DNA from: Klebsormidium nitens
Lineage: Eukaryota > Plantae > Klebsormidiophyceae
Direction: 5' to 3'
DNA: 64,000 bases
Assembly: GCA_000708835.1 (NCBI GenBank)
Contig: DF237190.1
Span: 1 to 64,000 of the forward strand
Part shown: positions 42,565 to 60,300 of the stretch, in pieces
Numbering within the stretch: position 1 is the first letter of the stretch
Layout of the letters: every line of letters begins with the position of its first letter
Program-made: the position numbers and the translations under genes
The notes under the pieces: generated by a model
The model's database searches: none
Seen by the model: only the letters and a program-made list of their open reading frames with translations
What the model was told of the DNA's origin: nothing

Positions 42565-45500
42565 ATGGAAGGGAATGACAGAAGCGACGGCAACTCTGCA
42601 ACAAGTGGTTTGAACACAACATTTCCAAAGAGTGGCCTTGCAGACCCATCTGCGGTGGCTCGGGGTTCGGAGCTCCTCTCGCTGTTGTTGAAGAAACCCC
42701 AGGCGCAAGGCGTGTCAGAAAGGTCAAAAACCCCTCCCGTGCAGCCTACAATAAGCAAAGAGGAGACTGCAAGACCACTCACGCCACCAGCGAGGCTGCC
42801 TAAGCATACGCTCAGCGATTCCGCCTTGCCGGCAAGATTAGGAGCCGCATCTAATCGGAACAGGAAGGTGGAGCACAACGGGAACAGGCGTGTTCAGAGA
42901 TTGCCGCCGAAAGGTGTGAATGGACGAAGAGGGGAGAACGAGGATGGAGAGAGGGAGGGCGAGGATGCAAGAACAGTAGAGCAACAGGAGAGGAGGATAA
43001 ATGAGTTGGGATCGGAAGTGAAGGAAGGGACCGCACTAGAGAGCCAACAGGTATTGTCGTTATAGTTTTGTTCATCTTTTATCTCGAGTTTTCTCAGCTT
43101 GTTCAACAGTATGATTGAGGATGGTGTGTGAGATTGATGCTTGATTGAGAAAAGCCAGGTATCTTCTCGTATTGACCACCAATGTCCTCGGGACTTTTCA
43201 TCACGCGGTCCTTGTGCAGTGACACAAGAAATGTTAGTTGTAATCCTTGAGTTGCGAAACTTGCAGGTGTTTTTCGTGTTTTTCAACCCTTGGTCATGAG
43301 GGATTCGCAGAGTCTTGTAAATATTCTTTAGGGTTTCTAAAGTTGGGCCGAGAGGGAATTGTCAGTTTGTCCAGGAGTATGCTACAACAGCCTTCAAGAG
43401 CCCTCTGACATTTCTAATGTCACCTGGTTTGTTCCGATACTCCAGCAACTATCAAGCATAAAAGGGTCGAATCCTGTGTGTCTGGAGTTTCCGTCAACAA
43501 TTAAATGCTCAAATGATGGTGTACGAAGGGTCCCTTCGCGATTCCCTGTTTCTTTGCTGCTATTGCAAGTTCAGGTTGTCATATCTTGGAACACCATTTT
43601 GCAACGTGCCCTTGGCATTTGAGAATTAAGTCTGCAATCAGACAAATCGCAGAGCCTCGAGACTTCATTGCTACCGAAACTCTTCAAGACGTACCTCGTA
43701 CTTCGAATCCTCATCCGAAAGCGTCCCAACATGTTCCCAGCCCTGTGCTCGGTATGTGCACCAGACTCCGGGAGGTCACTCGTCGTGTTTCAAAGAATGC
43801 GAAAGCGGGTATATAAGAACTTAGATGCGATCCGAATTCTCTAGAATCTAGGGTTTCAGGGCTTTGAGTGAAAGCACAGGTGTTCCACTTCCTTGCTGAT
43901 ATCGTCGTGACGTCATTTTTTCCATCTGCAGGGCCCCGTCGCCCGCTGGCGTATCCAGCGTAGCGCCACCCCGGTCGATGACCGCACCCTGCAAAATAAA
44001 CCAAAGGGGCCTGACGGCACCAAGGGCTTTGCGGTGGGTCGCGGCAGACCCCTGAACACCCCCATCGCAGAGCCTCTCAGATCGATCCTGGGGGAGCCCT
44101 CCTCTTCGGCTGGGACCCCGGTTGGGAGCCGACCGACAAGCGCTGATGTCAGCAGACCTGCGAGCGCTGATGCCAGCCAAAAGCACCGCAGAGGAAATGG
44201 TCAGAGTGCTGAGGAACACCAGCAGAGGGATCTGGCGCTCCAGCTGAAGATCGCGCAGATGCTTGTCGGGCGGGAGATGGAAAGCGGGGGATCAAGTAGA
44301 GGGGGGGAGAGGAAGCGGCCGAGCGGCGACGAGGAGGCGCCGTTCGCGCCGCCGCCGTCGCGCCAAGGCAGCCGGAGGGTTGAGGGATCCCCCTCGCATG
44401 GGGAGAGAGCGGAAGTCACTCTTTCTAGTGTGGATGAGAGTGGCCCTATTAGCAACCCTTCGGTTAACGTGGCCAAGCCCGGGGTTAGTGACAGACCCTT
44501 GGTTAGGAAGGAGGAACCAAAGCCCAGCGCGGATCTGCAGAAGCTGACGCAGTTGCTTGAGGGGGCGTTTGGCGGCCGGGGGATCCCTCCGGGGAGCGAG
44601 CTCGTGGCACGGGCGGCTGACGAGTGGCTCGAGACAGACTTGGCCTCCGCTCGGGACAAAGTCTCGGCCGCCCTAGAAAAGAGCATCGGAGCCCCTGGGT
44701 ATGGCGATCTGGTTGACCTAGAAAAGCACCTCAAAGCGACGCTCACGGAGCTGCGGCGCTTCCGTGCGGCCGTCGAGGAGGGGGCAGTTTCCAGTGACAG
44801 ACCAACCCCCTCCGAGGAACGTGCGCGGGAGGGAAAGTTAGAGATCGAGGTGAAACGGCTGAAGTACGAACTAGGGGCGGCGGCGGCGGAGGTTGGGCGG
44901 TTGGAGGCTGAGCTCGCTTTCGAGCGCACCGGGGGGGGTGTGAAAACAGGGCCGGCGGAAGGGGGCGCGGAGAGAGAACTAGAGCGGGTGAGGCTGGAGC
45001 TGCGGGCGTGGCAGGGTGAGGTGGAAAAGCTGAAGGGGGCTCTGGAGAGGAGCGAGGAGCAACGGCAGGCCAAGGGGGCGGCGGCAAGCCAAAAGTTGCA
45101 GGCAAAGGAGGTGAGTGCGTGGATTCTGTTGCCATGGATTGTCATGGATCGTGAGGTAAAGAGTCCGTCATATGAATGTTGCATTTTTATGGGCTAAGCT
45201 GGGCAAGCCATGCGTTGTCAATCCTACACCAAATTGACCCCCCAATCATGTAGTCCACGTGCTGGGTGTTTGTCCTGACTAGATACGAAGGACGTTTCAA
45301 CCCAGGTTGCTCTTTCCCTGTGGTCGCAAAAGATGGATTGTTCAAGTTCTCCAAATGCTGCTCTCGCCCTTGGTTTAGTTGGATTTGGTCTTCGGATTGA
45401 TTAGACGCATCAACTCTATTGCAAAGAAGTCACCACCACAAGATCCGGAGACAACCACACTTTGAGAGTAATGTAATCTCACGTTTTGGTGTTTTAAGCT

Positions 45501-46987
45501 TTGAAATGTTGATTCTGGCCCCGTATCGCTCTGGCAGTCAATCGTGGACATGTGAGGCCTCTCGTCATGTTAAGCCTCTGTTCCCTCAAATCGATCAGTG
45601 CGAACACAATAGACCGTTTGATCTCTGCAGGCCGAGTTCGTTCAGCTCCAACAAGAACTGGGGACGCTGCGCGCCACCGCGCAGAACACAGAGGATGCCC
45701 TGAAGCGCTCGCTCGAAGGAAACCGGCTCACGTTCGCTGCGGAGCTCGACCGGCTGCGTGAGCAGATCACTTCGGACGCCGACGAGATCGGACGGCTGCG
45801 GGCGAAGAACGCGGCCGAGCTCGAGGAAGTCGGACGGCTGAGATCGCAGGTGGCGTCCGCAGACGTGTTCTTCGGACTACCGTCCAAATCGGACCGCACG
45901 GGAGGCAGGGACGCTCAGCTGGGGGGCACCACTCAGCAGCGGCAAGAGGGGGGGGTCCCTGACGTTCTCAGCCAGATCTTCTCCAAGGGGCCGTCGGTTG
46001 CCTCGTCAGGAATGACGTGGCAGCAGCAGGACTTGGCACGTCAGCACGAGGCTCCGTCTTTCCAGCCCAGTGCCCCCCTGCGCCAGCCGGAAGTGCCCGC
46101 CAGCACGCAGCTCACGTGGCAGCAGCAGGAGATGACACGTCAGCAGGAGCAGTCGTGGGCTCCACTACCGATGCCGATGGGGGGGCATTTTGTGGGCCCG
46201 CAGAGACCCCCCGTCCTGCACGAAACCGACCTGGCATTTGCGCACCAGCAGAGGCAGCTCACGCACCAGCGTCACTTCCAGGGGGGGCAATTTTCGGGCC
46301 ATCCTAACCTCCCTTCCGCGCCCCAATTCCCGAGATTCCCGGCGCCGAATCCTGCAGCTTTTTGGGATAACCCGTCTGGCGCAGGTGAGGCGTCATTCAG
46401 AAAAGGCTCCATTTGATTGTTGATGCCTTTTATTGGGAGGTCGTTAGGAGCTTCGCCTAGGCAGGAAGCCGACTCCGACATGATGTCCCAAAGCTTTCGA
46501 GATTGGATTCTTAGACAGTCTCGATGTCTCAAAGACTTTGCTACCGGTTTGTGCGATACAAACAGGTTGGCAAGGCGAAGTTTGCGACTTCCTTGTCGGC
46601 TGAAGAGCCCTAGCAATTATTGCCTGCATTGACATCTCCCCAGTCTTAGATCTGCAAAGCAAAGTTGCAAGCTCAATTTTTCGAGGCAGACACCACGTCC
46701 AAACATTTGAGCCGGAAACATAGGTCGTTGTGGCCGGTGAAAATGGTGTTCTCTCAGGTTTCTCGCCTGATTGGTCGGACGGTCTCGCTCTGTCAGAAAG
46801 CATATACATCGCGTTTTGCTTTGAGGCCTCTTCCCCGTACTCACGAACAGTGTCGAACATACCTCCTGAAGAAGAGTCGCTTCTATCACGTCTCCCCTGA
46901 CTTCTTCGTACGCTGCCGCTGCAGGGGGGCCTTCTCGTCCCTATTCACACCTTGGACCGCAGCCCCACCCAGGGCAGCAGAGAATAG
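42565..46987 (+). CDS. Low-complexity/coiled-coil protein of unknown function with an internal SUZ-C-like motif (about 4 exons; last exon tentative)
   Basis: Exons 42565-43050, 43932-45110, 45631-46384, 46925-46987 are phase-consistent. KPKGPDGTKGFAVGRGRP at 43998-44051, long heptad-rich E/R/L/A stretch, Q-rich repeats MTWQQQDLARQ/LTWQQQEMTRQ. Confidence 0.7.
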
Positions 46988-48292
46988 GCCCTTTTCCACA
47001 GGGAGGTTGGCAGCAGCCCGGGAACCGGGGGCCTGTCGGACCATCGCTAGCTAGGACCGCCAGCGCAGTAGAACAGGAGCTGCTAGGTAGAACTAGGTCG
47101 GGGCCGAGCGCCGCGTTCACGAACGAGATGCCGATCCCTGTGTCCGTTTTGCTTGCTGCGGGGAGAAACGCGGCCAAACAGCCGCACGGAATGCTGACCC
47201 AGCCGGCGACCTCGGAGGAGTTGGGCCTGATAGAGGACGATGAGGTAATCTTCAGGGGAAGGTAGAAGTCAAGTGGGCGGACTTTCTTCGGCGCTGGTAT
47301 GCTCAGACGTCGTGCCTTGAGGGAGAGTTGTTTTTGAAAGCCGTTATTGAAACGGAGGGGATGGTCAGAGCGTGTTCGTTAAGTGCTTTGGGAATTACGA
47401 GCTTTTGGCACTCTATAGAAACGTACACGATGAGGGCGCTTGCCAGCGCCGATGCATCGTCGAAGTATGTGAAGGGATCTTTGAACGGTATACCGGGTGC
47501 GGCTGTCTTTGGTGACCATGCATTCTATTCGTGCACAACCCGCATAATCTGCTTGCACCGGTTTTTAGGCGCCGTGCAAGACAGTTTGAGAAAGTTGCAC
47601 ATGCGGGCCTCTTGTCAGGCAAAGCATTCTATGATCGTCACAGTAAGCACCAGACAGCTTGAAATTGCGCACTAGCCAGATGTAAGCTGTCGAGTACAGG
47701 CTCCTAAGTCGGATACGTGCACTTAGGATCATTCGAGGTGTAATTAAATACGATTGACATTGCATGGCACATGCGCTGTTTTGCAAAAACTAGCCATGCT
47801 ACTGAGCCCGCCCACTAGGCCTCCTGTCACTGCGTGCGGACTATGATATCAACGGGGCGCCAACGTGCCAGCTGGTATACATGGGTTACAGGCACCACGC
47901 GAATGGATCGATGAATCCGACGGCGCGGCGCAAATACGTGCTGTACGGCGATCATTTGTTGATTGAAAATGCCTGATTGACGGTCATCACATGACAGGAG
48001 TCACTTGGTTCGACATTTCTATAACCGCACACGCGTGCCGTTAGATCATGCATGACGTACTAACACCACGTACGATCTATTTGACATGAGGGCGCGACGG
48101 CCATCCTCGCGTAGCTTGTCGATCGGACTCACGCGGTGCAGCGCATGTAAGGCGGCAAGCTGTACGGCACATGACTGACTGATTCGATCAGAGCCTGCAA
48201 GTTACACTACAAGCCTGCATGCAGGCGGGCTAGTGTGGCACATACCTCAGACGAAGTAAGCCCGCGAGGCGTTCAAACAGTTTTTTGATCAA

Positions 48293-48488
48293 AGTTAGGG
48301 GAAGACAATCTAGACCGTTGATATTTCGAGCCTACAGATCTACGCTTCTCCTCGATGGTCTCAAGCTTGAACTTTAGGCACCCGAGGAAGAGGGCAATCA
48401 TGATATTGAACTCTACTCGGAGAGTCATTCGTAGTTTCCTTCGGAGGAGCTTTTCGAGGCGCTAGGGCGCCAGAAAAAATTTCCGTTC
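48293..48488 (+). repeat. Split direct repeat A1 (196 bp, identical to A2)
   Basis: agttaggggaagacaatctagacc...cagaaaaaatttccgttc matches 55573-55768 base for base as read. Confidence 0.95.
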
Positions 48489-48519
48489 GATTTTGGGCAG
48501 CATTGTGCTGTTAAGGTGA

Positions 48520-49344
48520 ATGACCTCACTGGAGTGGGTCGAAGCGGGAGCGGGGCACCGGGCCCCTGCGCAGGCACTCCAGGATCCCCCATTCAATGCT
48601 CTCGTGCTAGGATTTGAAGGCCAAGATTTTTCTGCACTCGAGCATGGGCAAGAGTTTAGCACCTGGCCTCCAAAGCACATTTTCCTAGACTTAGCCAAGA
48701 AAAGGCTGAGTAGGCAATTTCTCGAATCCATTGGACCGTCCTTGATAGCTGCAATCAATCTCTTCGACGCATGCACAGACGTGGGGTTCACAGACTACTT
48801 GTTCCTGGAAGGACTCAAACGGTTCCTGAAGAGCATTGACCTGCTGAAGCAAGAGGACGACAGAATCCTGTCTGACAAGCTCAAATGGAGGCTGGAGGCA
48901 ATGCAGCAAGCTTCCCTGGTCAAGCTCATGGAGGAGAAGTATGCCAGACTGGAACAAGCTGACGAGAGAAGGAGACAAGCCAACAGAAGAGCCAAGCGGG
49001 AGATTGCAGAAGCAAGAGGAGAAACCATCCTGGGAGTTGTAGAACTCCCTGACTTTGTCAGACTGCCACCAGGAGCAGTGATCCTGTCACCATACGAGAA
49101 GAGCTTAATCAAGTCCCTGCAAGACGCGCCCCCTGAGCTGCCTCTGAACTACCCTGCTCTAACCGAGGAATCTCGGTTTAGCGAACTGCAACTCAAAAGC
49201 CTTGGGCTTTCTGAGCTCTCACCGGCAGCAGTAGCTGTGCTGTTTGAATACCCAGAAGGCTTCAGGAACGAGTCGGATAGCTCGGAAGAGTCAGATACGC
49301 CTCCGTTTGGAACCCCTCCGCAGTCTCTCAGGCCTAGTGCGTGA
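48520..49344 (+). CDS. Retroelement ORF1, unknown function (helical/coiled-coil, 274 aa)
   Basis: Long ORF just after A1. Its TGA overlaps the ATG of the next ORF (TGATG, 49342-49346). Confidence 0.65.
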   Translation: MTSLEWVEAGAGHRAPAQALQDPPFNALVLGFEGQDFSALEHGQEFSTWPPKHIFLDLAKKRLSRQFLESIGPSLIAAINLFDACTDVGFTDYLFLEGLKRFLKSIDLLKQEDDRILSDKLKWRLEAMQQASLVKLMEEKYARLEQADERRRQANRRAKREIAEARGETILGVVELPDFVRLPPGAVILSPYEKSLIKSLQDAPPELPLNYPALTEESRFSELQLKSLGLSELSPAAVAVLFEYPEGFRNESDSSEESDTPPFGTPPQSLRPSA

Positions 49345-51075
49345 TGGAGCATCTCAATGCAGAACGTCTGGAAAGGAGGCAGGTGGAGAATCTTAGTAAA
49401 CTAGTTGGGCTGGAAAAGTTCGAAGGTCTAAGGTTCAAGTTCCGACCAGAGGGTCAATTGGGCAGAATTTTTGTGAAGGTGGTAGGAAGGTCGGGAGACA
49501 ACCTGAACCTGAAAGCGGTCGAGTCAGGAGCGGAGTACAAGGATGTTCCGCCGTCGCAGCTGTCTATCGGAATCGGAACAAGGAGAGAGGGAGATCCGCT
49601 CCTCGTAATGCTGAAGGAGAACGGAATGGAGTCGGATCAATACGTGCAGAGACAGTCTCTCGGAACGGAAGGGCGGAGAGCGGAATTCGGAACGCCGATG
49701 GAAGGAGGGGCGGAGTTTCCTTCGGGGGGGATTTAACCAGGCAAGAGGATTCTCAGCCCCGGTCACGGCAGGGCAGGGAGATTTCGGATTCCGCAGAGGT
49801 CCGGTTCCGCAAGCGGAGGTTAGAAGGCCGGTTCCGTTAAACCCAGGGTTCTCGCACCAGTTTGGATTCAGGCAGCACGGACCCGGATTCTTCCAAGCCA
49901 GACAACAACACCCACCCAGAAGAAGTGCCAGCTTTTCAGCCGTTCTTTCCTCCAGCCGCGGGACGTGGTAACCTGGGACCTCCCCCTGGATTCAGGCCGC
50001 GGGAGCAACCTCCGTCTAGAAACCAATCAGCCCAGCGGAGTTTTCACACCCCACCTGAGCAGTACTCGGCAGCCTCCCCCGGAGTCAACAGGAACCTCCT
50101 GACGGAAACCGGAAGGCATTCTGCAACGGCGTCGTCGCGGCCGGCAGCCGCCGCTCAACCCAAAGAGAAGAAGGAAGATAAGTCGGGCGACCCTGGCGAA
50201 GAACTCAGGGCGCGGCTGAAGAATATAGAAAAGCAGCTGAACGCAAACAAGGCGAAGACGGCAATAGAGTCGGAAATGAAAAAGCTGGCGTCAGCAATCA
50301 ACCCGGTTACGGACAGGGGGCTTCTCCTGCAACACGAGATGTATGCGGCCATTTACGCAGCGGAGAAGAATCAAAAGGGGGGGCTCGCGCTGGCAGGAGA
50401 CTTCGGAGTCTTTCTCCGCAATCGCTGCAGAAGGCTGTCTTACATGGCGGAGGATGTCTGCACGTACGCGCAGCAAAAGGTGGCGGAGCTCGGAGAAGAT
50501 GCGACGGACGCCGAAATAGCGGAGGTGGACAAGAAGATTCTCCGCTTCTATCAAGACAAAAGGGTCAAAGCGGAAGAGGTGCTCGGCAAGCACCCTGAAT
50601 GGCTGCGAGATAACAGGTAATTCTTTAAACCAAGATTCCGGACGAATGGAATCTTCTGAATGACCAGAGCTTAGCTCTTCTGAAAGATATGGCCGCAGGC
50701 CATCCCCTTGCTCCTGCGAGCTGGAGCTACGCTCCACAAACTGTCAGGCAGGGCGCGAAGCAAGCCCATGCCACTTTTGATGCCATATTCGGCGGGAGTT
50801 TCTTCCATCTCCCCAAATTGGTCAGTAACTTGACCGCAAGATTCTTAGCGTGAAACACGCTGTACTGATCGCCTTGCAGGCCGTTCTTGGATTCAGCGGT
50901 TGAGAGTGATTGAATTCTTCGCTGATGCATATCGGTTAATCCTTCCAGGCAGAGAGGGGGAGGAGCCGGCCGGGGCAGAGGTGATGGAGACCGAAGATCC
51001 GGTGGTGGGAACCAAGGAAGACCTGGATCTCCGGGGAGGAACAATTCGCCAGGGCGCAAGCGCGGCAGGGAGTGA
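49344..51075 (+). CDS. Gag-like region in pieces (49344-49736, 49862-50620, probable spliced RGG-rich tail 50949-51075)
   Basis: Position upstream of pol and Pro/Gly-rich then helical composition. A candidate phase-2 intron 50617-50948 (gtaatt...ccttccag) joins on RQRGGGAGRGRGDGDRRSGGG...RKRGRE*. Frame breaks between 49736 and 49862 are unresolved. Confidence 0.5.
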
Positions 51076-51525
51076 GTAGAAAGCCAGTCTCCCTGAAAGT
51101 TAGGCAGATTAGTGATACTGCCAAAGTGTATATAGATTTTTGGTGAAAGTCTCTAGTTTAGAATGCCAGAAGGAACTTCGTCTGGTCAGGCCTCCTCTTC
51201 GGAGAGGCAAAGCTTCAGAACCGGTTAAGGTTAGGGTTAAGGTAACCGGAACTGAGAAAGGAGGTTCTGTATTTAGTGTAACATTGGTGACTGTCGGAAT
51301 TAATGAGTGAAGAATTTCAACAAGAGATTACTTCCTCGTCGTGATTCTTCCTCATTCCAAACAGATTCATTCAGATGACGCAACGTGCAATCTCAGCGCA
51401 AAATATGACAAACGCTAACGGCCGAATCTTTGCGTGGTTATGATCTGAACGAGTTTGCACGGTTGCATCTTCACATGCCTATAGCCAGAATGGTTATTTA
51501 ACTGGATTGCCACAATTATAATAGT

Positions 51526-54130
51526 ATGTCTCTGATACTTCCCAGAGAGGAAGAATATGCAACAGAAGCCGAAGAGCCAGCTTCGAAAACGCCGGATGAC
51601 GGGAAGGATGACGTGGCACTGGGGGATCCCCTTCCGCCTAGCCGAAGCGGCGCCGCCGGGCTTAACCCTTCGACGGAAGAACTAGGGCGGAGTGGGAAGG
51701 AGTTAATCCATTCCCCGCCAGATCTCCCGGTCATGAGTCCTGTTCCGGAAAGCCAGCGGTCGAAAGGAGAAGAGCAAGTCGGAAACGATCAGGAAGAAAG
51801 CGTGCTCGCGGACGGAGAATCAGAGTTCCAGGACCAGGTCGGAGAGAACGCCGGAGACGAGCTGGAAGATTCAGTTGATGAAGCAACAGACCCCTTCAGA
51901 ATGGAAGCCCCTCCTAAATCTGAGCAGGAGATTGCAGAGGAGCTCAGTAAGATCCTTCCAAGGAGGTCCGAAGCTCCATCGCCAGAAATCCAAGTGCGTA
52001 CGGTCAAGGAGCTGCTTGAACAGATTAAGACTGAACCATCAGAATTGTCGCCCGATCTAGTTGAGCGAGCGTTAGCAATCCTGGATAACCTGCAGGAGAA
52101 AATCCCGAATCATGAAAGATTCGTCGCTAGTAGCTTCCAATCCTATTACCCAGCTTGGGAAGAGTTACTGAGAGGATCAACCAGAAAATCCTCTAAGTCA
52201 GTACTAAGCTGGCTAAAGCATGGCTTTAGACCGCGCTTTGACAGCGTAGATAAAGCCAGGCCGGATAAACTAAGAATAGTGGAGGCTATGCTAGCCAAAG
52301 TAGTGGGACCCCTCAGAATTCGACAGTTCCTTCAGGGCAAAAGACCTCACCGGATCGAGTTTCCCAACCATAAGTCATTCTATGACCGCTTCGAGTTCGC
52401 GGTCAGTGAAACTAGGAAGAATCTTGAATCCGGAGCGGTAGGTGTCTGGCCAGAAGGACAAGAGCCCCCTGAAATTATTCATCCAATGGGGGTCGTCGAA
52501 TCTGCCGGAAAGCTATGATAGGTACCTGAACATCTTCCTACTCCAGATTCCTTTCCAATACGAAAGACTCAGGGACGTGCTCCTTTTCACGTTCCCCGGA
52601 TCTTTCATGGCAACAGCTGATCTTAAATCCGGGTATTTCCACGTACCCATCCATCCCGCGTACTGGAAGTATTTCGGTTTTAAGATAGGGAAGAAAACCT
52701 TCTTCTACAAAGTCCTCTGCTTTGGCTTTGCTCAGGCCTGCTGGGTATTCACGGCTGTGATGAAAGAGCCGATTCTCGAATTAAGGCGTCTCGGTGTGCC
52801 ACTCTCTGGCTACATCGACGACCTCTTCTCGGCGGCAGAGACTTTTGGCAAGGCGCTCCGTCAGATCTTGTTCACTGTGCTCCTGTTCGCGGCTCTGGGC
52901 GCTTTCTTTGGTCTCCCGAAGTGCCAGCTGAGACCGCTTCAGGAGCTGAAGTGGCTGGGTTTCCTCGTGAACTCGATCTCGGAAAGTTTCTCGCTCTCAG
53001 AAACCCGAATGGAGAAGATCAAAAAGGCGCTTCTGGAAATAGTGAGCCTTCAGCTGACGTCAGCGAGAGCAATAGCCAAGTTGGCCGGAACGTTAGCTTC
53101 CGCAGCGCCCGCGGTTCTCCCCGTCGCAATTTACAGCAGATCCCTCTTCGAAGCCCTGAGCAAGAAAAGCAGTTGGGATGCACTTTTCCCGACGCCGGAG
53201 ACGGTAATTCGGACGGCAGACTTCTGGCTGCATAACCTCGAGAAGTTTAACGGCAGAAGGTGGTGGGCGAGGCCAACCTCGGTTGAGATTACGATGGACG
53301 CGTCGGGAGTCGGGTTTGGCGGTTTTGTGCGAACGGAGACGGGGAGAATCCTCCAGGTAGCGGGAACATTCTCCCAAGAGCAAGCGCTGCAGTCTAGCTC
53401 GGAAAGGGAGGTAGAAGGCTATGTAGCAGCACTGCAAGTAGCAACGGAGCAAGCACCGGACGAGATAAGAAACCGCTCAGTGCTGGTGATCGGAGATAGT
53501 CAGGCCGGGGTTAACGCCCTAACCAAATTCCGTAGCTCAGTCCCGTTCATCAATTCGGCGCTCCGCAAGGTGGTTGAGATGTCCGGGCAATACGACTTCG
53601 ATGTCGTAGCGCGTTGGGTGCCGCGGAAGGATATCACAAAAGCAGATGCTTTGTCCAGAGAGCCTGATCCGTCAGATTGGGGACTATCCCCAGATCTGTT
53701 CCGGCAAGTGACCCAATTCTTCTCAGCCCAACCGGCGATCGACCTCTTTGCTTCCAGAAGCCTCCACGTGGCGCCCGCCTACGTCAGCAAGTACTTTGCT
53801 CCAGGGTGCTCAGGGGTACTTGCTCAGGCCTTGGACTGGTCTAAACTAGTTCCACCAGGAGAAAGTGCATGGGTTTTTCCTCCGGTGGGATTAGCAGGGC
53901 TGGCCTTGAACCTGCTACGTAGATACCAGACGGAAGCACTGGTCTGTATCTGTGCACCAGAAGGATCTTTGCTGGATACCCAAATCAGGTGCATCGCTCC
54001 TAAAGCATTGGAAAAGGTATTCCTAGTCCCTAGGAGGGTCGACAGCTGCGTGCCTAGCCTCAGAGTTCCGGAAGGCACTAGGAATCCGGCTTTCCTAGGA
54101 TTAAAAGTGTTCCATATAATCTGGCAATGA
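51526..54130 (+). pseudogene. DIRS-type pol: RT - RNase H - N6-adenine methyltransferase-like domain, broken by a small deletion/frameshift near 52516
   Basis: ORF 51526-52518 ends GVVESAGKL* and the next frame resumes DRYLNIFL. Motifs ADLKSGYFHV, VLCFG, GYIDD (52811), KWLGF, TMDASG (53297), EREV, GDS, WVPR..KADALSR, IDLFAS (53741), WVFPP (53876). Confidence 0.88.
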
Positions 54131-54323
54131 TAATATGACATGACATTAAACAGGCCTTGATGCATTGCCATCATAATTGTCTTAGCTCCATATCTCATTC
54201 CATACCATGTAAAGAAAGATGAATTTAGTGTTCTGTAGAATGACTCATTTCTTAACCAATTCTCAAAGATCGGATGCATAAGTTCCCAGTACTAAATCTA
54301 ATGTTCCTTATGCTATTGTTCTG

Positions 54324-55382
54324 CTATCGAAGGAGCCGTCGAGGGAATCTGCTTGCTATCTCCTCAACGTAAATCCGAAACGCTGCGTACGAAGACCAAC
54401 GTCCACGGGCCATTAGCCGGGGAACGTCATAACCCTCTATTTCCGCCGCGTGCTGAACCGCTGACCTGCGGAAACTATGCAACGTTTCCCCTTCAAATAA
54501 ACCGGCCTCCTTTAGTCGCTGCTGCACTCGGCGCCGCATCGTTCCGTTTTTCATGGCTTCATTCTTGAATCCGTTTTTCCGCGCATTCAGTGGGCGGAAC
54601 AGGAATCCGCTGCCGACCGCCTGACCCTCGTTTTCACATGCGGAAATGAGTCGTGCAGCCGCCTCCAAAAATCCGCCGCTCACCGGGATCTCTGCGCTCG
54701 GCTCTGTCCGAACGGTCTTCGACCAGCCAGGTACTACGATCTCCGTCTTGAAACCTACCTGGCGTGCTTCTAGCTCGCCACACTCCCTTCCTCGACTCCA
54801 CGACTCCCATAAGTAGTTCACGATCGCTAAATCGGTTAGCGCACAGCACTTTCCCAAACCGCTTTTCTTCTCGACCTCATCCTGCAACCATCGAAGTAAA
54901 TCATTCACCTTCGATTCTGCAAACACCTTTGCTCTCTTCTCTCGAACCCCTAAATCATGCAGCCAGTTCCGGTAACCTTCCCGATAACTCCGCACGCTCT
55001 CTGAGTGCACGGGATTCTCTCCCGCTGATCGCCCGAGCATACTAAAACTCTTTCCCAGATGCGATAAAACGGCCTTGATCGCGGACGCGGACGCCACCTT
55101 CTCGCCCTCTGATCCGAACGTCCGGCAAGCGCCTAGGTGCCGTGGAAGCCAGAATCCCTGAACGAATGCTAGGACGTCGACGTCTGCAGCTTGATCAGCA
55201 GCTATTCCAACGTGCTCACAGAACTCCCTGAATTCACTCCACGTCCGTTTCCGTCCGTCTTCAAAACCTTCACTAACTCCTCGATTCGCGATCCCTGCTG
55301 CTGTCTGCAAGCTTTCTGCATAGAATCGTCTTATCTCGTCATCCCCCCACCGGTTGACAGGCTCTTTCACAACTCCTTCCAC
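54324..55382 (-). CDS. Tyrosine recombinase of the retroelement (antisense to pol)
   Basis: 352-aa ORF with the catalytic set R (SRGRE), K (WSKT), HSFR, W (GRWSS), Y (FRIY). It has no in-frame ATG near its start, so the true start may come from a spliced upstream exon. Confidence 0.92.
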   Translation of the reverse strand: MEGVVKEPVNRWGDDEIRRFYAESLQTAAGIANRGVSEGFEDGRKRTWSEFREFCEHVGIAADQAADVDVLAFVQGFWLPRHLGACRTFGSEGEKVASASAIKAVLSHLGKSFSMLGRSAGENPVHSESVRSYREGYRNWLHDLGVREKRAKVFAESKVNDLLRWLQDEVEKKSGLGKCCALTDLAIVNYLWESWSRGRECGELEARQVGFKTEIVVPGWSKTVRTEPSAEIPVSGGFLEAAARLISACENEGQAVGSGFLFRPLNARKNGFKNEAMKNGTMRRRVQQRLKEAGLFEGETLHSFRRSAVQHAAEIEGYDVPRLMARGRWSSYAAFRIYVEEIASRFPRRLLR

Positions 55383-55469
55383 GCCCCTCGCCCGCTTCCA
55401 TAAGCCCTGCGCTTCCCTGCACGGCCAAAGTAAACCGCTCTTTGCCCGCCATACTTTTGGGCAATTGTT

Positions 55470-55768
55470 TTTGGCGGCTTCGCTCCCGAAATTATAATCG
55501 ACCTCGGTGTGTGGTAAACAAAAGAGGCATGACTTCGACGCAACTGCTAGTCGATACCTTTCCTGTGTCTTCAGTTAGGGGAAGACAATCTAGACCGTTG
55601 ATATTTCGAGCCTACAGATCTACGCTTCTCCTCGATGGTCTCAAGCTTGAACTTTAGGCACCCGAGGAAGAGGGCAATCATGATATTGAACTCTACTCGG
55701 AGAGTCATTCGTAGTTTCCTTCGGAGGAGCTTTTCGAGGCGCTAGGGCGCCAGAAAAAATTTCCGTTC
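55470..55768 (+). repeat. Internal B1-A2 repeat junction (B1 55470-55574, A2 55573-55768)
   Basis: ...tgtgtcttc-AG-ttaggggaag...; B and A overlap at the AG dinucleotide. Confidence 0.95.
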
Positions 55769-56079
55769 CCACCCTCCCACCCTAGATTCAGTTCAGTACC
55801 CGCTCATTCAACTAAGGTAACTGATAACTTATACAGCAACTCACGTTCGTAGACTCCCTTCGTCAAGCGAGCTACTCCTAGCTCCTCCGGTTCCCTCAAC
55901 AGCTCCCCAAGGACGCCAGACGCTGTTCTGCCGCACACCGCAGGCTGCACTGCTCTCGCTCGCCCGCGCGCGCGAGAACACGTCGTCGCCGAACGGTCGT
56001 TCACCGCCGACTCGGACCTGCCATATTCACCCGGCGAGCCTTTTTAACTCAGGCTCACGTGTCTGCGGTTTTACGATCA

Positions 56080-56184
56080 TTTGGCGGCTTCGCTCCCGAA
56101 ATTATAATCGACCTCGGTGTGTGGTAAACAGAAGAGGCATGACTTCGACGCAACTGCTAGTCGATACCTTTCCTGTGTCTTCAG
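56080..56184 (+). repeat. Split direct repeat B2 (105 bp, 1 mismatch vs B1)
   Basis: tttggcggcttcgctccc...tcctgtgtcttcag; A55521 vs G56131. Confidence 0.95.
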
Positions 56185-57321
56185 CTATAGAACGTTGGAC
56201 CATCATTCGTGAAGTTTTCGGACGCGTACTCAGGATTGCATTAGGGTTGTTCTGATTAGGGGCATCAGCAACATGCGATGGGAGAGATGACGTGCGTGTC
56301 CTACGCCCACGTATTCTAGATCGATTACAAGTTAATTGCTGACTTGTCTGTTGTACACTACTGTGTACCCTACGGTGTACACATACCGTAAAGTTAAGGT
56401 GTCAACTAAAGGGGCCGGTTCGACAGTTGCCTTTTTACAAGCTAGCCTGTCACCTGCTCTACTGGGATTAAAGTCTTACATTAAGCCTGGCAAAACCAAG
56501 AAGAATAAGCAACGACAGCGTTTGTCTGTTCAGCTTCAGCAATTGAATACCTGCAAGGTTCACCTTGGTACACGCAATCACTAAGCCGCGTTAGATCCAA
56601 CATTTTAACCAAGGAGTCGTCTACGACCGTCGCGAGACCGCATGCTCTCTTGCAGGCTGACCAACCTTAGGTTAACGATCACAATGCACGTATGCAACCC
56701 ACCAAACCCTGTCTTTCAATACCTAAGACCCATTTAATACAAGGCTACAGTATGCATCCTTACAACCAGGCCAGACTCGTGATCTTCAATGGCTCGTGAG
56801 TTTGAGAGCTGTCCTTGGCAGTGGGAAACTGCTTCGACGATAGACTGTCGTCTGCTCCGACCTTCTTTTCCAAGCTTATCGAACACTAATGGCACAACCC
56901 GACTGCCTTCGAGTGCGCGATAGTCCCTGCCCCTGTCACTGCATCGGTCCACGTGCCGCGTCACCATTGGCCCTGATAGCTGGAAGCGATTGGCTAATAT
57001 CACCCCAATGCCTATAAGTTACAGCCAAGTAGTTGATGAAGCGGAGCCGGGTGACCGTTTTCCGGCAATAATGGTGGAAGTTGGAATGCAATCGGAGTAT
57101 GCCTAATTAATAAGGGTAATACGATACTTAGTGAGCCTGATCCCCCCATCCAGAGAGGCTTATATCAGCTGACGTAACCGGGACGCTATAATTGTACAGG
57201 TTTCTATTCTATTATTCGAGACCCTTATGCAACTCAAACACGTTTGGGGCTCATGAAGGTGTCCCTGGTTTGCCCCGTCAACTCCTGCTCAGTCCTCGGT
57301 TAGCAGCCGGGTTAGTCTGGG

Positions 57322-60300
57322 TTAGCCCGGGTGTCCGGATCCGTAAACCCCAACGGTCCAATCGGAGGAAGAACCGGTTGGTGCAATCGCTGGCCACTCG
57401 GAGTATCCGGCGAGCGTTCCTTTCAGCAGGCCCAGTTCCTGGATGCAAAAGCGTTGTGTGAGACTGCCTTCCGTCGTCAAAGCTTCGCAGCCGGTCAACC
57501 GCCTTAAAAGAAGCGGCTGATCGAAAAGAGATTCACGAGTGTCTTGGAAAGGTCAAGCGCGGGAGGCCAATATAAGTGCTGCTAGAAAATATCACAATAC
57601 AAGCTCTCAAACTCGCTGCATGATGAAAGCGTACGAGCCCACTTGTGAGCTCTGATTGCGATGCCAATACGCTTTTCTGAGGCCGCTTTTTTTTTTGGCG
57701 CCATTCCTGCAAGCGTCGGCTGCAGGCTCGAAGGCACTCTAGCGAGCATACATGTCTTTGGATGGTGTGAACGTGCAGCTTGAGGTTAACGGACCCTACC
57801 TCCAGCGCAAGTTCCGCGTGGCGGGACGTCAGCAAGGCGTCCAGTTCTTCGCCCCACGTCGCCCTCCAACCGGTCTCGCAGGAGGAGAACTGGGCGCTGG
57901 TCCAGGGGGCTGACCCGCCCGGTAATTGCCCCCTTGCTTGCGGATGTGGGCGGTATTGTCCAACCGGGGCACTGTGCGGGCCGACGTCGAATGGGGATCG
58001 CGACCGGTAGGGTCCAACCGAGGCAATTGGTGGGGCCAAGTCGAATGGGGATCGTGACCGGTAGGACCCAACCGAGCCATTTGGCGGGCCGAAATCGAAG
58101 GGGGATCGCGACTGGAGGGGCAACACTGGGGAGAGGTTTGGGAAGGGGCCGATTGGGCTCAGATAAATGTTGTCCGCCCAACTCGCGTCGTAACGGTCCG
58201 GCTCCGCGTCTGGGATGACGAGGCGGGGTGGCGCGGGGATGCGGAGCTTTGTGCCCGGTGAAGACGCACCGGTCGCGGGCTCTGCAATGGCAAAGGGGAG
58301 ACTTGATGGGCGGGGATTTGGACCGGGCGGTGGTTTGTTGGACAGTCAAATGAAGGCATGATGTCACTCCGACGCAAGTAGTTCTGCAGAAGTCGATCCA
58401 AGAAAGCACTTAATCCTTCGGACAAGGCGTTGCCGGTTGGACTCTGTTGCGCAGACGATAATCAAGAAAGCACACGTGCTTCAAACAAAATTCTGCTTCT
58501 ATCTCTTCTCGTGATGCGCCGGAGAGCCCGTTTTGCTTTAAGCTTTGCGGATCTCGAAATCTGTTCTCAACGTTACCTTGAGAGCGAGGTCGGAATCTAC
58601 GAGAGTTGCAGACGATTTGGCTCGCACAACGACAGCTGAAAAGCCCCGCAGGATTCATGGGAACGTGGTGTGCCGGGATTTCAGAATTAGAAGCGGGTTC
58701 ACCGGGCAGCCTACACAGCAGCCCCAATTTGCCAGGAAAGCGGCCTTCAAAAGACGTCCGGATGATGGTAGAATAAAACGGCGCAAAAATGACACCAAGC
58801 TGGAAAGAAAAGCACCCAGAAACATGGATGGCGCGACGAACCGGCAAGAAACGGTGTCGCGAGCCGCGCCGCTTCGAACGGCCACGTGTCCTCCTTCGCG
58901 GCCGCCGAGCAGACGCTCTCCGCGGGACGGGCCCCGTTTTCGCCGCCGTCTCCGACAAAGCTACGCGCTGCCAAGCTTGACACAGACGGTCCCTCGATTA
59001 CGAGGCCTACAGACGCGTCGGTCACGGTGCTCGCGGCCCTCTCCAGGGTTGCCACGTGGCAGCCGTACAGGACCGGCGTGCACGAATGGACGGTCGAGAG
59101 GCTGCCGCTGCTCTGCGTCTTGGGGATCGGTGCCAGCTGGAGGGGTCCGGTGAAGGTCACTGGGGGATAAGCCTGGGGCGAGCACGACTCGCTGGCGGGG
59201 TAGTCGGGCCACTGGGAAAGTGGCTGGTTCCTGCGAATTGAAAACGAGGCGTTATCGAACCGGCCTGACAGGTGTGATCAAGTGGGTGTCCAGAACGTGA
59301 CTTGCAACTGACAGATTGTCACGAAAGGACAGAAGAGCGGCCGCGAAAAGATTCCGTTTTCGCGTGCACTATTTGCCGCGAAGCCTGCTTCCTGATGCAT
59401 GTTACAATCGACATGCTCAACCGTTTCCTTTTGGAGGCGAAAGGGGTGTCAGCTTTTCCGAAAAGGTTCTCGTCTTCGGAGTGATACCTCCCAAGAGTCC
59501 GCTGGAGCAAAGCAAGCGACGAAAGGCACAAAAGCAGACACGACCACATTCCGCATGTTCGTTTGCACGTGGTACCGCAAAAGACTTCGATATCAGAATA
59601 GACGTTAGAACGCGTATAAACAACGTGTCAAAAAGGCCTCACGAACCGGCGCCAAACGAAATCTGCCAGAAAGCGCCGTTGTCTGCAACTCAACAAGGAA
59701 GCTCGCTAAATGAACCAGTTCGAAAGCACCACGGCAAACAACAAGTGAACCCTTTCAATCGTGGGCTGGCAATATCTCAACCCTGCGCAGGTTACTTCGC
59801 AGAAACACGCCGTTCGTCTGTCGCCAGGATCGCTTACCATGGACCGGGGTAGCTCTCGTCCGGCAGCACGAGACTGGGGTGAGTGACCGGGACGTCCATC
59901 CCTAAATGTGCCCCGTAGGCAGCAGCCGGGGGGTCGAACGGACGACCGGGGAGCTGCTCGGAGCAGAAAAGCTCCTGCACGGAACATCGGCGATGTGGTC
60001 AGTGTTGGATACCGCCACGCTAATCTTGACCACAGGGGAGATTTTAAGTTTTCCGCTCCTCCCACGTTTCCGCTCTGCATTCTGATCGGAAGGACTGACA
60101 CTCAGCTACCTGACCAGGCGGACCGACCGACCGCCAGACCGCACTCCCGGCCGCCATGGGCTGCCGGACCAGGCGGACCGACCGACTGCCGGACCGCGAT
60201 TGGCTCGGTCCGCCGGTCGGTCGGTCCGGGAAGTTTTTCCAGATTCAACGTACCAGTATCGGTACGTACCGCGCCACTGCGGGTCCCATCGGGTGGCCCA

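Follow-up and report, generated by a model that had tools for sequence, protein, structure and literature searches.

A 64,000-nt window (contig DF237190.1, positions 1 to 64,000, to which all coordinates refer) carries at positions 48293-56184 a retrotransposon of ~7.9 kb that we read, at a probability of about 85%, as a structurally complete, recently inserted, coding-defective copy of a PAT-like element with an antisense tyrosine recombinase (YR) gene, belonging to a large Klebsormidium-type radiation. Its limits come from a repeat search over 46000-58500, which resolved two families of split direct repeats in the order A1...B1A2...B2 and, within the same interval, no inverted repeat reaching 30 nt (Table 1). 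An earlier note on this DNA had proposed a young insertion in which the open reading frames (ORFs) are framed as A-ORFs-B-A-311 bp-B, and this layout is now confirmed to the base: the two A copies agree at 196/196 positions and the two B copies at 104/105, the sole mismatch falling at position 55521 (A versus G). The end of B1 and the start of A2 share the dinucleotide AG, and the ends of the element and its flanks likewise have only AG in common, as left by insertion without target-site duplication. The near-identity of the repeats thus indicates that the element inserted recently, in agreement with the age first proposed; the remainder of the window holds no second copy.

The B/A junction itself has a distinctive symmetry, with a perfect 7-bp inverted repeat (TGTCTTC / GAAGACA) flanking the 8-bp core AGTTAGGG and spanning the boundary between B1 and A2. 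Inverted arms around a core are the usual architecture of a tyrosine-recombinase site, and a junction-spanning inverted repeat of such kind was recovered in 65 of 20000 shuffles. The ends of the element coincide with the first two bases of the core, and we consider the junction repeat a candidate recombination site of the element. Short junction sequences have also been proposed to define integration sites in DIRS elements, to which the AG at both ends offers a parallel here (PMC7192593). These observations bear on whether the right end (B1-A2-311 bp-B2) is genuine or a tandem or assembly artefact, produced by a full element with a second, heavily deleted copy behind it or by collapsed reads. 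Internal repeats nearly identical to the terminal ones would suit such an origin; yet PAT, Ngaro and VIPER elements are defined by the layout A1...B1A2...B2 (PMC4157794; PMC6681497), the repeat search found no similarity between the 311-bp segment and the rest of the element, and a symmetrical recombinase-type site sits precisely at the B/A junction, so that we regard an artefactual right end as highly improbable.

Between the repeats, pol on the plus strand and YR on the minus strand converge on a short AT-rich spacer, an arrangement that had been noticed from the sequence alone and that the Pfam matches and the spacer's composition (193 bp, 34% GC) substantiate. Pol is distributed over two ORFs (51526-52518 and 52442-54130), the latter of which carries the RVT_1 match (E=5e-9) to the reverse transcriptase (RT). 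No Pfam match to an RNase H (RH) or methyltransferase (MT) family was obtained for the window's pol itself, even on re-scanning at E up to 10; however, both stretches can be aligned, residue by residue, to the RVT_3/RT_RNaseH and Dam stretches that Pfam recognises in the related proteins P0099 and P0108, pol residues 413-486 corresponding to the Dam stretches of both. Methylase motif IV reads FPPV, so the Dam-like MT domain is probably degenerate and inactive, and an inactive methylase has been described for DIRS elements (PMC3537659). On the opposite strand, the catalytic set R196, K221, H301-x-x-R304, W328 and Y337 of the YR is conserved in an alignment of 14 sequences. Neither an integrase nor a protease family was matched among the eight largest ORFs at E<=0.01 or among the re-scanned ORFs at E<=10.

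Table 1. Features of the element in plus-strand coordinates of the window; a slash marks a predicted splice junction.
Feature	Position	Strand	Remarks
A1, 5' terminal repeat	48293-48488	+	196/196 identical to A2
ORF1, 274 aa, conserved orphan accessory gene	48520-49344	+	73-75% identical to P0241 and P0242, equal length
Gag-like region (ORF2 + ORF3)	49344-50620	+	collinear with K. nitens gene model P0014
Candidate intron 1	50617-50948	+	AACAG/GTAATT ... CCTTCCAG/G, read from the sequence
Candidate RG-rich exon (40 codons, R or G in 25)	50949-51071	+	open in the phase of the upstream donor
Candidate intron 2	51072-51524	+	GGA/GTGAGT ... ATAATAG/T
Pol: N-terminal region, RT, RNase H, Dam-like MT	51526-54130	+	RVT_1 match; two ORFs
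AT-rich spacer where pol and YR converge	54131-54323	.	193 bp, 34% GC
Tyrosine recombinase gene	54324-55382	- (antisense to pol)	Phage_integrase match, E=1e-6 (Pfam)
B1, internal repeat	55470-55574	+	104/105 identical to B2
Candidate recombination site, B1/A2 junction	55566-55587 (22 bp)	.	TGTCTTC, 8-bp core AGTTAGGG, GAAGACA
A2, internal repeat	55573-55768	+	identical to A1, 196 nt, 0 mismatches
Unique 311-bp segment between A2 and B2	55769-56079	+	repeat search
B2, 3' terminal repeat	56080-56184	+	one difference from B1

The RVT_1 and Phage_integrase matches both fall inside A1...B2 with no integrase family alongside them, which places the element in the DIRS order. Within that order an RT-RH-MT pol combined with a YR and split direct repeats points to the PAT-like group; the presence of an MT-like domain excludes Ngaro and VIPER, which are without one, and the absence of inverted repeats excludes a DIRS1-like element. 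On domain content and repeat layout, the element is thus a PAT-like member of the DIRS order with an inverted YR.

The earlier note had called the element kangaroo-like or PAT-like, taking the opposite-strand recombinase to be the hallmark of kangaroo. Its placement in the DIRS order and PAT type stands, as do the split direct repeats and the antisense YR; the kangaroo comparison falters on the internal repeats, which lie downstream of the YR in the Daphnia-like manner, and an opposite-strand YR is no hallmark, being found in a Daphnia pulex PAT form as well (PMC4157794). Kangaroo, from Volvox carteri, is defined by an inverted YR, a Gag that has no zinc finger and internal repeats located between MT and YR (PMC4157794). 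The element resembles it in its split direct repeats, MT-like pol, opposite-strand YR and a Gag that likewise is without a zinc finger (no zinc knuckle of the form CX2CX3-5HX3-5C occurs in any plus-strand frame of the element), but its B1A2 block (55470-55768) is placed beyond the YR, adjoining B2, and the host of kangaroo is a chlorophyte rather than a streptophyte, the comparison being one of layout only. It is the strand alone that makes the element kangaroo-like. An identical cartoon layout is seen, in an animal host, in the Daphnia pulex form that Szitenberg et al. 2014 depict in their Fig. 1G ('novel PAT'): its YR is inverted, and its internal repeats lie shortly upstream of the 3' terminal repeat. 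This is a match at the level of layout, and the same authors treat YR inversion as homoplasious (PMC4157794).

Other known systems diverge further in strand or in repeat type. TOC3 of Chlamydomonas and the Pat1-like elements share the split direct repeats and the RT-RH-MT pol, and the TOC3 Gag is also without a zinc finger (PMC4157794), but in both the YR and pol occupy one strand. A scan of metagenome contigs with the pol alignment retrieved only distant elements: these marine DIRS-like elements (L001-L080) encode a homologous pol, 24-31% identical, with a YR nearby, but the YR lies on the pol strand in all 56 of the 56 loci where both genes were found. The marine contigs (OFxx; L001-L005, L023-L028, L038-L042, L066-L073) comprise several DIRS-like families with many near-identical copies, in which pol and YR share a strand and their ORFs often overlap. 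Scans of metagenome and viral contigs with the YR alignment gave no relatives, and a sequence search of the PDB with the YR profile gave no match. DIRS-1 of Dictyostelium, finally, also pairs an RT-RH-MT pol with a YR, and it uses an internal copy of its joined ends as template, and its proteins act in trans (PMC7192593); DIRS-1 and DIRS1-like elements, however, have inverted terminal repeats together with a complementary region in the interior, in contrast to the direct repeats here.

The closest relatives of the individual genes define both the lineage and the unity of the element. Among named proteins the best matches are gene models of Klebsormidium nitens, with identities of 56-65% for pol and 85% for gag, which supports the streptophyte-alga host suspected at the outset, the organism being assigned here from protein relatives. 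Closer still are P0001 and P0002 for pol (74% identical) and P0121 and P0122 for YR (81%). In the pol tree, in which the outgroups are all unlabelled, the window falls in a 28-row clade of K. nitens, Logan and JGI sequences with a support of 100, while marine metagenome and fish DIRS-like sequences lie outside it. DIRS and Ngaro repeats have been recorded in K. nitens (Penium genome preprint, 10.1101/835561); our literature search found no paper describing these families themselves, the tyrosine-recombinase retroelements of the lineage appearing in the papers searched only as repeat-class percentages (10.1101/835561). As to the gag model P0014, its identity to the window is 85% for gag (49916-50551) and 65% for pol (52544-53863), a discrepancy that reflects either a chimeric model or recombination between families.

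With genes on opposite strands and a YR that is without a start codon of its own, the element might instead be a composite, in which a recombinase element of other origin, such as a Crypton, was inserted in the opposite orientation into a pol retroelement. The relatives argue strongly otherwise. ORF1, pol and YR co-occur on ~7-kb contigs in three assemblies, with P0241 (ORF1, 73%), P0001 and P0121 on one contig of 7214 nt, P0244, P0004 and P0128 on one of 7089 nt, and P0243, P0089 and P0223 on one of 7633 nt, and additionally on one 39-kb K. nitens scaffold that holds P0245 (GAQ91117) and P0019. The identities of the three genes track one another, at 73/74/81% on one contig and 38/56/59-60% on another, and these shared contigs imply that ORF1, pol and YR travel together. 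Furthermore, the tails of the K. nitens pol models P0005 and P0094 match the plus-strand translation over the window's YR gene, and in the JGI recombinase model P0233 it is the antisense of the pol C-terminus that the tail matches. Gene models from other loci, three in all, thus run into their neighbour's antisense, making the convergent layout a property of the clade. The YR also resides within the A1...B2 frame, with no extra repeats bounding it. A composite origin is consequently scarcely credible, the least so of the alternatives weighed here, and the convergent genes are best read as parts of a single PAT-like element.

In light of this conserved organization, the state of the coding sequences can be judged against the relatives. 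One lesion is in pol, where a 14-nt deletion at 52515/52516 within RT motif 1 shifts the frame and splits the gene into its two ORFs. All 17 relatives tested read AGK(L/E)RLICNDRYLN at this site; the window has GKL, a stop codon at 52516-52518, and DRYLN one frame over. Aligned individually, the 17 relatives show a gap of 5-7 residues and a change of frame after 52512-52515, the match resuming at 52517-52526 in 13 of them. The deletion thereby removes 'RLICN' from motif 1, at a site that is not in a homopolymer.

Gag bears two further interruptions. Its start ATG overlaps the stop codon of ORF1 (TGATG), and ORF2, a middle stretch and ORF3 occupy three successive frames, connected by two +1 frameshifts, of which the first falls in a G7 run (49724-49730) and the second near 49905-49916. 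By three-frame translation, P0014 reads through all three frames without losing a residue, and P0245, in its ORF2-like part, continues uninterrupted past the equivalent region. The YR, for its part, has a frame that is open upstream to ~55570 with no ATG in it; its closest relatives begin MW..ARG, where the window has L(TTA)W. No convincing in-frame donor-acceptor pair was found that would supply an upstream ATG exon for the antisense gene, and the copy has either lost its YR start codon or obtains a start by other means. Also at the 5' end of this gene, a 37-codon ORF on the minus strand (55336-55452) starts at the first ATG downstream of the TATA-like ATTATAAT in B1, overlaps the YR frame's 5' end in a different frame and terminates at a G6 run, with a possible effect on YR translation.

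Not every one of these lesions is equally secure, and three points weigh against a defective copy. The gag frameshifts were deduced by comparison with a related family's gene models; the first of them could be a homopolymer sequencing error, given its G7 run; and the gene caller may have picked a non-ATG start as the initial M of the closest YR relatives, which renders the loss of the start codon uncertain. Taken further, the element could be coding-competent, its apparent lesions being sequencing errors or family features and its expression relying on splicing and non-AUG starts. Besides the G7 run, canonical splice sites that join Gag, an RG-rich (arginine- and glycine-rich) exon and Pol in frame (discussed below) speak for competence, as does the variability of the residue before the conserved W (I, A, S or L in more distant YR relatives), which leaves room for a true start further upstream. 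This is countered by the 14-nt pol deletion, whose loss of 'RLICN' contrasts with the presence of this motif in 17/17 relatives and involves no homopolymer, and by the second gag frameshift, which is not in a long homopolymer either. We consider a coding-competent element very unlikely, and retain the reading of a defective copy: the earlier description of the element as complete holds for its structure and not for its coding capacity, in view of the pol deletion, the two gag frameshifts and the YR frame without AUG. Since the repeats differ at one position in 301 nt, the lesions could postdate the insertion, and the copy was either mobilised by proteins acting in trans, as shown for DIRS-1 (PMC7192593), or decayed soon after it inserted.

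We infer the life cycle of the intact element from published PAT/Ngaro and DIRS-1 models. From the layout A1, ORF1, Gag, Pol (RT-RH-MT-like), opposite-strand YR, B1A2, 311 bp and B2, a sense RNA shorter than the element would be transcribed, and reverse transcription would rebuild the ends from the internal B1A2 copy, giving a circular DNA closed at the B/A junction. The YR would then exchange strands between this junction, at the proposed site of 7-bp inverted arms around the 8-bp core AGTTAGGG, and a target sharing little beyond AG, leaving no target-site duplication. Since the YR gene is antisense, it is not translatable from genomic RNA, and its expression would need transcription from a DNA form of the element.

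Predicted introns between gag and pol suggest that Gag, Gag-RG and Gag-Pol may be made by alternative splicing. The ORF3 stop codon (TAA) sits within the donor of candidate intron 1, and the 40 codons that follow its acceptor form the RG-richest open stretch of this length on the element's plus strand. A single base separates the ATAATAG/T acceptor of candidate intron 2 from the pol ATG at 51526, and exon-by-exon arithmetic places both donors in phase with pol. The K. nitens model P0019 passes from HPEW through an RG-rich stretch to pol at the equivalent position. Unspliced genomic RNA would terminate at the TAA within the first donor and yield Gag; removal of intron 1 would give Gag an RG-rich, nucleic-acid-binding tail; and removal of both introns would produce an in-frame Gag-Pol fusion. 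More tentatively, and with doubt prevailing, the clade as a whole may set its Gag:Gag-Pol ratio by splicing and not by frameshifting or read-through, express YR only from DNA forms, and maintain a conserved orphan ORF1 with a fold unlike any solved structure.

ORF1 itself has an intact frame. Suspected at first as an extra ORF, it has proved, by conservation of both length and sequence, to be a real, conserved orphan gene, with relatives that share contigs with related pol and YR genes. The wider family amounts to 16 clusters among 1.84 billion representative proteins, which have in common a domain at the N-terminus, a long helix and a TPPxSP motif at the C-terminus. An AF2 (AlphaFold2) model built on a 16-sequence alignment reached a pLDDT (predicted local distance difference test) of 86.8, as against only 50 for a model built on three sequences. 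The fold found no convincing match in the PDB or BFVD, where only generic helical matches were returned (best Z 7.1, Foldseek E above 0.1), and Atlas searches with ORF1 and Gag gave nothing usable. A role in particle assembly or as a nucleic-acid chaperone would be a guess.

Taken together, the analysis resolves, to the base, the anatomy of a PAT-like element from a streptophyte alga whose recombinase gene is antisense. It extends to the green lineage the combination of an inverted YR with downstream internal repeats that had been reported from Daphnia, and the occurrence of this layout in both fits the published view that structural traits of these elements arose more than once. Current knowledge is not overturned, the layout features being already known from Volvox and Daphnia and the copy itself being defective, but three outputs lend themselves to testing: the 22-bp candidate recombination site, the orphan ORF1 with its confident model and the splice-based model for Gag-Pol.

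Several lesser observations concern the recombinase and the surroundings of the element. Weak Pfam matches to ALOG_dom occur in the N-terminal domain of 3 of the 14 YR relatives, P0121 among them (best E=0.022), while the window's YR has no such Pfam match; the weak matches fit the proposal that DIRS recombinases gave rise to plant ALOG domains (PMC3537659). Rfam and tRNA scans of 44000-60000 gave no matches, and the ORFs flanking the element matched no Pfam family. Inside the 311-bp segment, at 55800-55845, short GT...AG intron-like strings are present on both strands (AAG/GTAACT...TACAG on the plus strand and AAC/GTGAGT...CCTTAG on the minus strand), which are probably too short for introns. 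Upstream of the element, in GC-rich DNA, two 36-nt direct repeats (46015-46149) are 89% identical at a spacing of 99 nt, and 1.8 kb downstream of it three diverged tandem copies of a ~54-nt unit, 75-78% identical, occupy 57946-58120.

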